Assembly (NCBI RefSeq): GCF_006345805.1
Contig: NC_043014.1
Span: 47,616,001 to 47,680,000 of the forward strand
Length of the DNA stretch: 64,000 nt
DNA from: Octopus sinensis
Lineage: Eukaryota
Direction: 5' to 3'
Below, piece by piece: positions 27,950 through 32,581 of the stretch. The notes under the pieces were generated by a model. That model saw nothing but the letters and a program-made list of their open reading frames with translations. It was not told the DNA's origin and made no database searches. Positions within the stretch are counted from its first letter, which is position 1; the number at the start of each line of letters is the position of its first letter. The position numbers and the translations under genes were made by a program.

Positions 27950-28000
27950 ATGGCTGAAGAAATGCAGAAAATAACTGGGAAAATGCAGGAAATTCTACTG
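27950..28000 (+). CDS. IFIT/TTC22-like TPR gene 1, first coding exon (MAEEMQKITGKMQEILL)
   Basis: ATG in good Kozak context; 17 codons; GTGAGT donor at 28001 in phase 0, matching the acceptor at 31093; paralogous exon at 38492-38542. Confidence 0.8.
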
Positions 28001-28602
28001 GTGAGTATATCAATATATACACTCGCATGAACAAATGTATACTAATACCTATTCTTGCAGAATGTGTGCGTACATGTATGCTAATTCATTTTCCTTATAG
28101 AGAGATCGTATAGATAAACACCAAGAGAAGAAGGACTGGATTTAACACCAATCTTTTATTTACAGGAAGTCAAAATATATACAATTAATTTATCACAACA
28201 TAATAGTGATAGGGAAAATTGCAGCACTTATCATAAAGAGCAAAAACATTTTTTAAAAAGAATCTGTCGCGAGAATGACGACAGGAAAAATTCCTTAACT
28301 AGTTCTTCAAAACTACTCTAAGAAGGTTGAGAAAAGCATGACATAAGGTCATGAACAATGCAAAATAGCATTGCCAGAATGAGTGATGAAGTTCCAAGTG
28401 GCAAACTAAGTATCCCTGAATAATTTCCCCAAAATCAGGGCTTTTATAAATGCCGTAAACCTGATTCTAAGAACCTTTCTTCATGGAAAAGAAACTTTTC
28501 ACGAAGATTAGAATCGCGGCCAAGGAAAAAGTGTAAGACAAACAAAAGACAGCCGACATGATTATGACTTCATGTTGCTGCTAAAGTCTTATAACTGCTA
28601 CA

Positions 28603-28995
28603 ACAGCAGTATAACCCGGCTTTGCTCGGGTTTGTTTCAACCCTTTAGAATTGGAATTCTTGAAAAGTAAAAATTTTGCATTATGTAGCTTGTTATTATC
28701 TTTAAGTGAACATTTTTCTGGTTGAAATACACCAAAAAATGGCGACACAGCTGTCAAAAAAATCGTAAAAAATAGGGATTTTCATAGAAAAAAATCACCT
28801 TTTTGATGTAAATAATTTTTGGTGTTAACATGGTCCGATTTGAATTTTTTCTTCTACGGAAGGAAGAGCAAGCCTTCTTCTATCATACTCTTAATTTTGG
28901 TCAACTTGCGCCACAGGGTCTTGGAGGAGATAGTGTTAGTTGAAGACTACCAAACCTGCCATACACAGACAACTTCAGCTTTATATAGACAGAGA
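28603..28995 (-). mobile_element. Helitron-like element, second family
   Basis: Same terminal hairpin CCCGGC.TTGCTCGGG and TATATA-rich opposite end; different interior. Confidence 0.6.
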
Positions 28996-29221
28996 TTAAT
29001 TGTACAGAAATATATAATTTCGCTGCTTTTCGGAGACACACACACACACACACATGTATGTATATATGAATATGTATAAATGTGTGGGTGCGAGTGTATG
29101 TGTGTGTGTATATGTGTGTGTTATATACTTATAGGCGTAGTTGTGCGGTAAAAAGGTTGTTTCTCAACCCTGTGCTACTGGGTTTGGTTTCAATGTGCAG
29201 CGATTTCAGTTTCCACCAATA

Positions 29222-30455
29222 CAGGGGTTGGACAAAATAATGGAAACACCTTAACGTTTCAAACAAATTTATTTTAATATGGCAGTAATTTTGATATTTG
29301 GCAGTAATTACAACTTGAATTCTATGAGATATGGACTTGTACAAAGTTTGAATTGTTTCCAAAGGAATTTTTGTTCAAACAGTCTCCAGTTCTTGTAGTG
29401 ATGATAGTGGAGGATATCGGCTCCTTCCTTATTTTTCTAAAATGCACAATAAGTGTTCTATAATATTGAGACCTGGGGACTGTGGTGGCCATATAAGATG
29501 TTCAACCTCACTAAAATGTTCCTCATACCATTCAGTAACAACTTTAGCTGAGTGAATTGGTGCATTATCATTCTGAAAGATTGCATTTCGCTCCGGAAAC
29601 AGTTCTGCAACCATTGGATGAATTTGATCAGATAAAATGCTTCAATAATCTTGACTATTAATTCTGCCATGAAGGAAAATCATTGGGCCAGCGGATTTCC
29701 AAGATATAGCCCCCAAAGCTCATCATTGCAGATCCTCTTCCATGTTTAATAAAAGAAAGCAGTCTGGGTCAAATGCTTCATTTGGCTGACTCCACAAGTA
29801 CACTCGGTGGTCGGAAATAGGGTAAAAGATGACTCGTCTGAGAAAATAACTTTCTTCCACTGCTCTAGAGACCAATTCTGTAGATTTTTACTCCACTCTA
29901 AACAGTTTGCAACATTTGTTTTTGAAGGTAGTGGTTTTCTGATTGCAGCCCTCCCTTTGTGTAGCTCCCAGCGAACTGTTTTTGTGGAAACTGGGTTCTC
30001 AAGGTGGTCATTAAGCTCTGCAGTAATTTTGGGAGCTGTACTTTTGTGATCCTTTCACATAAGAGTCCGACGGTCCCTATCTAAAAATTTTGGCTTTCTT
30101 CTGGAGTTTTGTTTCGCCGAGGAGGTTTTTCCCTCTTTCTCAAAGATTGTTATTACTTTCGAGACAGTACTTCTTGATACACCAAACATTTCGGCTGTTC
30201 TCGTTACGCTAGCGCCTGCGATACGAGCACCAACATTTTGACCTTTTTGAAAGTCCGATAAATCTGTCATTTTAATGAATTTTAATTACCTTATTTTGAT
30301 GATATCTGAAAAGAAAAAGCAATTTTAGCAAAACATATTAAGCAACACTAATAATAAATAAAAAAACCTAAAAATAGACAAGCTTTTGACAGCTTTATAG
30401 ATATTTCAAAATTATGATGTGATGATGCTAGGTGTTTCCATTATTTTGCGCCTGT
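29222..30455 (-). mobile_element. Near full-length Tc1-like transposon with a disrupted DD36E-spaced transposase
   Basis: TIR CAGGGGTTGGACAAAATAATGGAAACACC, partial at the right end; MTDLSDFQKGQ..., FSDESSF, QNDNAPIH...WPPQSPGLNIIE; frameshifts. Confidence 0.9.
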
Positions 30456-30477
30456 GTGTGAGTGTTATATTATATTA

Positions 30478-30784
30478 CTAGCAGTATCGCCCGGCGTTGC
30501 TCGGGTTTGTAAGGGAAATAACTATATAAGCATTTTTAGAGAGTTACTTCCCTTATATAACCCGAGCAAAAATCCTTAAAAATGCGGAAAAATTATGGTA
30601 ATTTTTTTTTTAAATCGTAGACTCATCGTAGACACGCGCTAATACCCAGAAGGGCTTGATATGAATGACGACTATAAGATACCCGCTTTTGGTTAAACTG
30701 CACCGCAAAATGTGTGAGTAGTTAGGAATCTAAATCGGAGTAGACAGACACACATACACAGAACTTTAGTTTTATATATAAAGA
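30478..30784 (-). mobile_element. Non-autonomous Helitron-like element, short subfamily
   Basis: A|TC...CTAG|T on the minus strand with terminal hairpin. Confidence 0.85.
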
Positions 30785-31093
30785 TAATACAGCCTGTCAA
30801 TCTTGTTGTTGTTGTTGTTGTTGATGATGATGTTGATGATGATGATGCATTTATCACTCTGTCAAACACACCTCTTACCTTGTTCTCTCACTTATTTACG
30901 CTCACTTTTCTGTGCGCATATTAAAAACATCAAACATTCGGTTTCAAAATACTCAGCCACTACATCAACCGAATCAGACTAGGAAAGTTTAGCATTGTTT
31001 CATTAACTAAAAATCGAAAATTGGAGAATATTTTTTGTCTATGATAATGTGTGATATCATATTTCATACGCAATCATTTTGTTTTTATTTCAG

Positions 31094-32581
31094 GATGAGA
31101 AACGTAAAATCAAATTGTACAGGGAAAGAATTAAAAGATTTCCAAGTATAATGGAAGAATGTGTTGAGAAAACCGAAGAAGTTTGGTCGCCTCTCTACAA
31201 AAAAGTAGAAAATACATTGAATGATGATATCTTATTTGGTTTAGAAGATGAGATTCGTCAAAAGAATGTCCTAGTATATATTCTGTGGCAGATGAAAGAT
31301 AAATTTTCAGCTGAAAAATTAGCCAATGAAATTCAAGAAAAGAAGCCAGATAACCTGGTGGCATTAACCAACCTTGCATTCATTCATTTGTATAATAGAA
31401 ATATCCCTGAGGTAAGAAACCTTTTGGATAATCTAAGCAAGCTTGAAGAAAGAGAAAATTTCTTGCTGATAGAAGCAGAAGGCAAAAGAAATGTTGCTTA
31501 TTGTTTAGCTACTATATCTTTTAAAGATCATGAAAGAGCTGTCGAACTTTACAAAGAGTCTCTCAACGTTTGTCCAGACGATTATCTGTGTATGTTTTCT
31601 ATTGCTTTGTTGCAATATCGTTGTTTAAGAAAGACCATGGATAAAGAGAAAATGCGTGAAAATATTAAGGAATCAATACAGTACTTAGAGAAAATACGAT
31701 GTGCTTTTCCACACCATATTGACAAGGCCCTAATGGGAAGAACATTAGCATTGATAGGTTTGTTTAAAATTAGTCCTTGGAATTTTCGTAGTCAACCAGC
31801 TGAAGAGTATTTTCAGAGAGCTCTTCATATTTCCCCTGATGACCCCTATGTTTTGCAGAAAAGTGCCAATAATTATATACGTTCATATCAGCTTGAACAA
31901 GGAAGAAAATTGCTTGAAAAAGCAATTGAAATAAAGGCAACATCATATTCTCATCATCAGCTTGGATTACTCTATCTAAGAATGAATACACCAAAATATA
32001 CATATGTCCCAATGAACAAACAATTCTCAGAAGAAACGAATTTATTTGCGAAAGTTTTAAAACATGCTCAAAGTATTCCTCATATAGAAAGGAATGAGTT
32101 AATCAACAAAGCTGAATATCACTTTCAACAAGCTCTTGAACTTTCTCCAGAAAATTCAGCTGCTCTATATGATATCATTTTATTATATATGTCTTTGAAA
32201 GAATATGACAATGCCAGGAAGTATAGTGAAAGATTTAAAGCAGATATCAAAATGCAAGATGTTAATTTTAACATTTTGTTTGGAAGATTATGTCTTAAAG
32301 AAGCAGATGTAAAAAATGATGAAGAAGAAAAAGATCAATTAAGACGTACAGGAATAGATAGGTTTGTTCTGGCTCTTAAATCTGCTGTAGAATTTCTTCC
32401 TTTCGACAAAGACCTGATAGAAATTTGGGAGATAAAGGAAATAATACTTGATTTATATGAGTATGGAAATGGAAATGGAAATACTGAATACAAAAAGTTT
32501 GTTTTGGAATTCATTCACTCAGTAGAAGACCTTGCAAATGATAAAGAGCTCCAAAATATACTTCACAAGAGTGAATTATAA
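31094..32581 (+). CDS. IFIT/TTC22-like TPR gene 1, large second exon (495 aa; ~512 aa total)
   Basis: Open frame after acceptor TTTTTATTTCAG; TPR-like helices; motifs PDNLVALTNLAFIH, PYVLQKSANNY, SHHQLGLLY and KAEYHFQQALE resemble IFIT. Confidence 0.9.
   Translation, partial: DEKRKIKLYRERIKRFPSIMEECVEKTEEVWSPLYKKVENTLNDDILFGLEDEIRQKNVLVYILWQMKDKFSAEKLANEIQEKKPDNLVALTNLAFIHLYNRNIPEVRNLLDNLSKLEERENFLLIEAEGKRNVAYCLATISFKDHERAVELYKESLNVCPDDYLCMFSIALLQYRCLRKTMDKEKMRENIKESIQYLEKIRCAFPHHIDKALMGRTLALIGLFKISPWNFRSQPAEEYFQRALHISPDDPYVLQKSANNYIRSYQLEQGRKLLEKAIEIKATSYSHHQLGLLYLRMNTPKYTYVPMNKQFSEETNLFAKVLKHAQSIPHIERNELINKAEYHFQQALELSPENSAALYDIILLYMSLKEYDNARKYSERFKADIKMQDVNFNILFGRLCLKEADVKNDEEEKDQLRRTGIDRFVLALKSAVEFLPFDKDLIEIWEIKEIILDLYEYGNGNGNTEYKKFVLEFIHSVEDLANDKELQNILHKSEL

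Follow-up and report, generated by a model that had tools for sequence, protein, structure and literature searches.

Can the antiviral IFIT proteins of vertebrates have relatives in an animal lineage that, to our knowledge, possesses no interferon system, and if so, what would such proteins do? This question was raised by a stretch of 64,000 nucleotides of the Octopus sinensis genome (RefSeq assembly GCF_006345805.1, contig NC_043014.1, positions 47,616,001 to 47,680,000 of the forward strand; this whole stretch is called the window in the following), where a first-pass annotation made from the sequence alone had recognized a tandem pair of IFIT-like TPR genes. Sequence comparisons and structural modeling indicate that the window probably contains two tandem members of a clade of cytosolic TPR proteins with the IFIT fold, a clade peculiar to Octopus that has duplicated recently; gene A is intact and gene B frameshifted. 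These genes appear to stem from a mollusc-wide family in which the IFIT-like TPR region is followed by a TIR domain, and they have lost this domain.

The origin of the IFITs was placed at the jawed vertebrates by Liu et al. (2013), who excluded the deuterostome-invertebrate and jawless-vertebrate candidates tested, the invertebrates sampled being sea urchin, acorn worm and lancelet and including no mollusc (PMC3688568); the IFITs are described there as having arisen together with interferon (PMC3688568). In our literature searches no paper on invertebrate IFIT-like genes was found. The first protein search returned 15 relatives, all of them from Octopus, which carry the NCBI names "IFIT5-like", "IFIT1B-like" or "uncharacterized". 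As the public automatic names are already IFIT-like, the bare finding of such genes is not new.

Gene A and its likeness to the IFIT proteins

Gene A is built from two coding exons on the forward strand. The first one (27950-28000, 51 nt, beginning with the ATG at 27950) consists of 17 codons, encodes MAEEMQKITGKMQEILL and is followed by a GTGAGT donor at 28001, the boundary reading ...CTACTG/GTGAGTAT. The intron (28001-31093, 3093 nt) is in phase 0 and closes with a pyrimidine tract and CAG, the acceptor reading TTTGTTTTTATTTCAG/GATGAG at 31093/31094. The coding part of the second exon (31094-32581) encodes 495 amino acids of an IFIT-like TPR solenoid plus the stop codon TAA (32579-32581), and joining of the two exons in phase 0 gives a protein of 17 + 495 = 512 amino acids.

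The in-frame splicing of the 17-codon exon to the 495-amino-acid exon had been proposed in the first-pass annotation, and it is supported both by the splice sites in the window and by the N-termini of annotated Octopus proteins. The annotated O. sinensis RefSeq protein P0001 (510 amino acids) begins with MAEEMQKITGKMQEILQ/DEGS, exactly as in the gene A join, the O. vulgaris models P0008 and P0011 start with MAEEMQKITGK[M/L]QEIL[L/Q] followed by DEGS, and the N-terminus of P0005 from O. bimaculoides is MANELQGITKTLQELKI/DGER. The 57-nt string of exon 1 plus donor occurs a single time in the window. In the O. vulgaris reference genome the exon-1 DNA recurs together with its flanks and donor about 5.1 kb upstream of the large exon in two further paralogs, and one annotated model of these two begins precisely at exon 1; P0015 and the paralog next to it, which are more distant, begin with an exon of 14 codons followed by a GTAAGT donor. 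Since annotated proteins and paralog loci carry the same exon, exon 1 of gene A is no chance open reading frame (ORF). That this exon can be missed, as had also been suspected, is illustrated by several O. vulgaris models of 474 amino acids, which start with MEECVEK or MEESFEK and lack it.

The copies of exon 1 in the O. vulgaris reference lie at 57.85-57.98 Mb (L002 4849-4899, L003 4896-4946 and L003 21234-21284). At these loci the exon and its flanks are identical to those of gene A, though more than 2 Mb away, except that in L003 4896-4946 the last codon is changed from Leu to Gln. The large exons of the same paralogs differ from gene A by 6-8% (0.064 nonsynonymous, dN, and 0.07-0.08 synonymous, dS, substitutions per site), and an identical exon 1 beside diverged large exons suggests that the 5' end was duplicated recently or has undergone gene conversion. 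A possible acceptor in front of exon 1 of gene A (...acacacag/CTATAAAGGAATG) may imply an upstream non-coding exon.

The relationship to the IFITs was assessed by sequence, by profile and by fold. In Pfam the TPR part matched generic TPR models only. When the single sequence was compared with the PDB by phmmer, IFIT5 was the first match with an expectation value (E) of 5.4e-8, collinear over 55-393 versus 34-359. The Octopus family profile was led to IFIT5 (E 1.4e-10) and IFIT1 (E 2.1e-10, profile positions 85-421) in the same database; natural TPR proteins such as CDC27 match just about 70 positions of this profile. Because TPR proteins inflate such statistics, a generic TPR control was run. 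A family profile of 19 members (octopus, named molluscs and unnamed relatives), which contained no IFITs, was aligned by hhalign to a vertebrate IFIT profile made of frog, fish and human sequences, and gave E 1.4e-30 and a score of 243 with 22% identity over 325 columns, versus E 4.8e-20 and a score of 165 with 13% identity over about 330 columns in the control with seven unrelated bacterial TPR proteins. The hhalign probability alone did not discriminate, as it was 99.3% even for the control. Long repeat proteins sum many weak domains, which makes total HMMER scores deceptive, therefore single-domain collinear matches were used when the IFIT profile was compared with all fetched proteins; the Octopus short forms, i.e. 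the proteins without TIR domain to which those of the window belong, proved to be the best single collinear non-IFIT match (83 bits, 289 positions). The PDB ranking, the hhalign comparison with its control and the IFIT profile all point to a sequence relationship to the IFITs beyond generic TPR likeness.

The AlphaFold model of the gene A protein, calculated from a 78-row alignment, had a predicted local distance difference test (pLDDT) value of 93 and a predicted template modeling score (pTM) of 0.89, and it displays the full-length TPR clamp fold of IFIT1 and IFIT5, a fold defined by three subdomains plus pivot helices. In the Foldseek comparison with the PDB the top 14 matches were IFIT5 and IFIT1 chains, aligned over about 500-540 columns with target-normalised template modeling scores (TM) of 0.53-0.65; the next matches (OGT and designed TPRs) had query-normalised TM values of 0.26-0.33. 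A hidden Markov model search and a Foldseek comparison of an AlphaFold model were among the checks which had been suggested along with the designation of these genes as IFIT-like: both placed IFIT1 and IFIT5 on top, and the designation is upheld by sequence, by profile-profile comparison against a control and by predicted fold.

The octopus and vertebrate proteins share the all-helical TPR clamp of about 480-510 amino acids and the same order of blocks (EKGW..LKF / AE.AY..SR.G; W..G.A...YR / WKFGLAL..RR; PD.PYVLRY.AKF.R / PDD.FVL...G...R; TS.FLHHQ.GLCY / TS.A.HHLGL), and according to sequence and model they would resemble, and work like, each other at the level of the fold and of several signature blocks. 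An N-terminal CHFTW motif is conserved in the IFITs and is visible in the frog copies, but no such motif was found in the Octopus N-terminus, and the hhalign match begins after that region. Differences concern also the residues corresponding to K150, R253 and R260 of IFIT5, which are lost in the copies of the window, and the TIR domain, which is present in the usual form of the mollusc family and absent from the IFITs. Both groups form multi-copy families with clustered members. In layout the octopus genes, with two exons of which the first contributes little coding sequence, are analogous to the IFIT genes, a parallel which had been drawn earlier with the proviso that the intron phase differs; indeed, exon 1 of the octopus gene has 17 codons and is followed by a phase-0 intron, whereas that of the vertebrate genes is the ATG plus 2 nt (PMC3688568). 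Judged from sequence and model, the protein of gene A folds like the IFITs and is related to them specifically, though distantly, in sequence; we treat it as a relative and not as an orthologue. We call it IFIT-like and do not count it as a member of the IFIT family, because the pocket residues as a set (see below) and the CHFTW motif were not recovered.

The mollusc TPR-TIR family and the loss of TIR

An exhaustive profile search of 1.84 billion representatives (E up to 0.001) yielded 2723 matches. The named non-octopus matches that were looked up were all of mollusc origin with the exception of one frog IFIT, and they came from gastropods (Batillaria, Pomacea, Gigantopelta, Babylonia, Nucella, Littorina and Lymnaea) as well as from bivalves (Argopecten, Tegillarca, Pinctada, Mercenaria and Ostrea); the many matches without a name may include other phyla. 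A second, word-indexed protein search with a diverse profile gave mostly bacterial TPR proteins and two fish IFITs, and did not widen the taxon sampling. The TPR region is collinear with the gastropod and bivalve proteins in single matches (best E 1e-51 to 1e-20), and identity across the family alignment (A5) is 17-25%.

Most of the mollusc relatives are 750-1300 amino acids in length, and the long Octopus paralogs P0010 (736 amino acids) and P0014 (741 amino acids) likewise have a C-terminal extension. The last 125 or so residues of P0010 are shared by 84 of the 201 fetched proteins in an iterative search. With an E limit of 10, no Pfam model matched the C-terminal 227 residues of P0010 when these were scanned alone. 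In the PDB, a profile built from 25 of these C-terminal domains identified the TIR domains of TIRAP (E 1e-4), TLR15/TLR2, Hydra TRR-2, IL-1RAcP and TRAM, and the Pfam model TIR_2 matches 6 of the 25. The structural model of the domain (pLDDT 84) had TIR folds only among its best PDB matches (IL-1RAcPb, TRR-2, SARM1 and MyD88), with query- and target-normalised TM values of 0.55-0.75. By profile and by model, the C-terminal domain of the long forms is a divergent TIR domain, largely missed by Pfam. Since TIR is shared by most of the relatives, the usual design of the family is an IFIT-like TPR region connected through a helical linker to TIR at the C-terminus; P0010 and P0014 have this architecture in common with most of the close gastropod and bivalve relatives, and the genes of the window differ from it.

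Genes A and B encode no C-terminal TIR domain. Their coding sequences stop after ...HKSEL, the very point from which the long forms go on as ...KSELSQKLRKL. Downstream of gene B, at 53570-54108 of the forward strand, there is a decayed relic of the linker and TIR, which is interrupted by stop codons, frame changes and a GA-repeat insertion, shows 47-55% identity to the corresponding parts of P0010 and P0014, and likely sits in the 3' untranslated region of gene B. Downstream of gene A the relic is deleted (138 bp in place of 826 bp), and in P0007, a model from O. sinensis, ...IMQD is spliced to the equivalent relic. Because a TIR relic follows gene B, the genes of the window are regarded as TIR-less derivatives of the mollusc TPR-TIR family. 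This derivation was not seen in the first-pass annotation, and it changes the likely mechanism.

Proteins designated "TIR-TPR" are a listed class in the Aplysia immunome (PMC9334734), and another article mentions invertebrate "ecTIR-DC" families, to which the mollusc TPR-TIR proteins are assigned, as presumed adaptors (PMC6321704). In the literature searched, from which the primary ecTIR-DC paper is excepted, no link of the TPR part of TPR-TIR proteins to the IFIT fold was found. Both this link and the TIR-less, fast-evolving Octopus clade appear to be undescribed in that literature.

Pocket residues, substitution rates and possible role

In IFIT5 the binding of RNA is impaired by the mutations T37V, Q41E, K150M, R186A and Y250F, and also by R253M, Y254F, R260E, Q288E and F337A, the strongest attraction to RNA being exerted by K150, R253 and R186 (PMC9677429). 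The equivalent positions of the octopus protein were assigned in the central blocks, where HMMER, MAFFT and hhalign agreed, and residues were counted in 68 other members of the family. R186 corresponds to R193 of gene A (R in 67 members) and H287 to H305 (H in 58), while an aromatic residue is found at the site of W146 (Y153 in gene A; Y in 39 and F in 26). K150 is replaced by T157 in gene A, whereas the family has R in 59 and K in 5 members. R260 corresponds to I279 (R in 50, K in 6), K257 to N276 (K in 33, R in 14) and R294 to L312 (K in 38, R in 7). The site of Y254 is occupied by K273 (K in 25, R in 19). Y250 is Y269 in gene A, a position not conserved in the family (S in 22, F in 17, Y in 9); Q288 is Q306, where H predominates (H in 51, Q in 6), and R253 is replaced by Q272 at a site that is not conserved either. 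The by-eye calls made earlier, according to which Y250 and Q288 are retained and K150 and R253 are lost, were thus reproduced by all three programs.

The pocket of IFIT5 for the RNA 5' end (K150, R186, Y250, R253, Y254, R260 and Q288) is therefore not preserved as a set in gene A. In the long Octopus forms the site of K150 is occupied by R and that of R260 by K; of the basic K150, R186 and R260 positions the short forms of the window keep only R186, and R253 is lost as well. From these alignments it seems that a basic pocket resembling that of the IFITs is retained across the family as a whole, and that the short-form clade of the window has probably lost much of it.

Substitution rates were calculated pairwise for gene A, the reference copy of gene B and the genes of P0003 and P0004. 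Among these four short-form genes dN/dS ranged from 0.68 to 1.53 at dS values of 0.03-0.08. Random substitution at the observed divergence left the 495-codon frame open in 7%, 1% and 0.9% of the trials, and the reading frames of the short forms are open in three Octopus species. Taken together, the rates and the open frames would agree better with a functional protein that evolves rapidly, perhaps under diversification, than with simple decay, which is not a proof.

The following explanation can be offered. The mollusc family would be a cytosolic receptor combining a sensor with TIR, in which the IFIT-like TPR clamp would sense an anionic ligand, most likely the end of a nucleic acid, while signalling output would be provided by TIR. 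The short forms have lost TIR through a stop codon after ...KSEL and, evolving fast, have replaced several basic residues of the pocket; most likely they would now be stand-alone binders of a ligand other than the 5'-triphosphate (5'-ppp) RNA of IFIT5, or regulators or decoys of the long TPR-TIR receptors. Taken jointly, the origin from a sensor-plus-TIR family followed by loss of TIR, the remodelled pocket and the stand-alone binder or regulator/decoy role form a combination that we consider reasonably probable. The analysis shows how the genes are built, which fold and which family they belong to, that TIR was lost, which pocket residues are kept or changed and how fast the sequences evolve; from this we infer an immune role, a class of ligand and a function as regulator or decoy. 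An antiviral role like that of the IFITs is plausible, not proven.

A true functional analogue of the IFITs, in which the 512-amino-acid protein would clamp the 5' end of non-self RNA (5'-ppp or cap0) and block translation independently of interferon, would agree with the full-length IFIT1/IFIT5 fold of the model, with the retained equivalents of R186, Y250, H287 and Q288 and the aromatic residue at the W146 position, and with the organization as a family of two-exon genes present, like the IFITs, in several clustered copies on one chromosome. However, the short forms carry T in place of K150, Q or E in place of R253 and mostly I in place of R260, they have not retained F337 and F339, and the CHFTW region is unaligned; in IFIT5 the K150M change alone makes binding about 15-fold weaker and the triple change Q41E/K150M/R253M about 150-fold (PMC9677429). 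An element resembling the interferon-stimulated response element (ISRE), with the core GAAAGTGAAA, is situated at 38238-38247 on the minus strand, about 250 bp upstream of the ATG of gene B, and might be counted in favour of such a role. The motif scan, however, found 18 sites of the ISRE-like pattern GAAANNGAAA in the window, the one upstream of gene B included, versus 2.9 expected, a six-fold excess that comes mainly from six copies of GAAACTGAAA, a sequence different from that upstream of gene B and possibly part of a dispersed repeat; since a repeat family inflates the ISRE-like pattern across the window, it is not specific. Altogether we regard a genuine functional analogue of the IFITs as unlikely.

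The same proteins might be housekeeping TPR scaffolds with no immune role, e.g. an orthologue of TTC22, which is a TPR protein of similar size, or a protein-protein adaptor, and their likeness to IFIT would then only reflect shared ancestry within a TPR subfamily; a resemblance of the N-terminal NLVALTNLA motif to TTC22 had been noted in the first-pass annotation. The generic TPR models returned by Pfam and the alignment of generic TPR profiles over some 330 columns are compatible with this, but the lineage-specific expansion at several sites on one chromosome, dN/dS near or above 1 and the TIR domain fused to most of the relatives speak against it, as do, weakly, the NCBI automatic names (IFIT and not TTC22), which are inferred to follow the best curated match; a housekeeping scaffold is quite improbable in our judgement. 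It could also be supposed that the short forms became functionless after the loss of TIR and are turning into pseudogenes, in accordance with the frameshift of gene B in the window, the degenerate TIR relic, the dN/dS of 0.7-1.5 and the lost basic residues of the pocket. Against this stand the 493-495-codon frames kept by gene A and at least three O. vulgaris copies, for which the chance under random substitution is 0.9-7%, the conserved splice sites and exon 1, the intact short-form orthologues of O. sinensis and O. bimaculoides (76-88% identity) and the intact gene B of the reference assembly, and we consider mere decay very improbable.

Several points weigh against the explanation that we favour, the TIR-less descent from a sensor-plus-TIR family. 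The sequences from which the residue equivalences were read are only about 20% identical, and the N-terminal equivalences of E33, T37 and Q41 are unreliable, because the fish IFIT row shows no E33 or T37 there. TPR similarity statistics are inflated, and the unrelated TPR control still reached E 5e-20. The dN/dS near 1, the loss of TIR and the frameshift of gene B are compatible with a family drifting toward loss as well. Furthermore, no catalytic residue could be assigned in the TIR domain, which may be a mere scaffold.

Should the relationship of the mollusc proteins be genuine, the clamp of the IFITs would predate interferon, and the TIR wiring found in molluscs suggests a receptor made of sensor and signalling parts rather than a simple RNA-sequestering protein. 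A still wider proposal would be that the IFIT fold predates the vertebrates as the sensing arm of a TIR receptor, the TPR-TIR proteins being sensors of nucleic-acid ends that retain the basic IFIT pocket (equivalents of K150, R186 and R260) and signal through TIR, and the IFITs and the short forms two independent TIR-less derivatives; we put this forward tentatively and hold it to be doubtful. If the relationship to the IFITs holds, the mollusc family would offer a candidate cytosolic nucleic-acid sensor in molluscs, including farmed bivalves with viral disease, and the Octopus short forms, as a natural case of output-domain loss, could show how stand-alone effectors or decoys of the IFIT type originate.

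Gene B and the surroundings of the two genes

A second paralog of the same architecture had been reported in the first-pass annotation. This holds for the first exon and for the donor and acceptor, the latter two being those of gene A, and not for the reading frame, which is shifted in the window. The first coding exon of gene B (38492-38542, forward strand) has 17 codons encoding MANEIQNITKILQESKL, a peptide 70.6% identical to the N-terminus of O. bimaculoides P0005, and its GTGAGT donor stands in the same GTGAGTAT context as in gene A. The intron (38543-51939, forward strand) is 13.4 kb long, no second exon-1-like sequence was found within it, and the acceptor at 51939/51940 is identical to that of gene A. 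The second exon of gene B matches gene A with 95% identity over 1.6 kb.

The second exon of gene B as read in the window (51940-53187, forward strand; 95% identical to A) is shortened by a frameshift and ends at a stop at 53187. The cause is a 1-bp deletion at 53155-53156, where the T present at 32310 of gene A is missing (GATGTAAAAAATG in A, GATGAAAAAATG in B). In the shifted frame the remainder of the coding sequence (53157-53420) can still be read through to ...ILHKSEL*, where the ancestral stop lies; counted from its first ATG, the ORF is 53199-53420. At the same locus the O. vulgaris reference assembly has an intact copy, P0002, which is 99-100% identical on either side of the frameshift. 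The deletion adjoins a run of A, and it could be either a real null allele or an assembly error of the homopolymer type. The 3' regions of the two genes contain a common block (32735-33019 matches 54262-54544), in which AATAAA signals at 32899-32904 and at 54424-54429 (both forward strand) likely mark the 3' ends of gene A and gene B, respectively.

The part of the window at 42369-63921 aligns, mostly with 96-99% identity, to 60.195-60.217 Mb of the O. vulgaris chromosome OX597833.1 (GCA_951406725.2), from which the window was taken to represent a further assembly or haplotype of O. vulgaris. Paralogs are found on this chromosome at 8.8, 57.85, 57.96 and 60.2 Mb. An Rfam scan of the window gave no match.

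The intron of gene B contains tandem copies of one 197-amino-acid ORF at 38915-39604 and 39784-40377, the former with an Asn-rich N-terminal extension of 32 amino acids. With a weak zf-RVT match (E 2e-4; the zinc-binding region of reverse transcriptases) they look like retroelement fragments. The same intron harbours a minisatellite at 47982-50208 (2.2 kb, about 62 copies of a 36-bp unit), the GC content of which is 58% in a region of 30-40%. It yields long spurious ORFs on both strands, and compared with the reference assembly it shows only about 91-96% identity with many shifted registers. Very long microsatellites, namely (TATG)n of 2.2 kb at 1-2198, (ATG)n at 19868-20639 and (TACA)n at 43934-44444, account for the majority of the listed long ORFs. 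Finally, a repeat unit of about 180 bp, possibly a short interspersed nuclear element, is scattered across the window in triples and single copies: it forms tandem triples at 15082-15632 and, inside the intron of gene B, at 46111-46662, and it occurs also at 26363-26615, 55675-55929 and 62558-62792.

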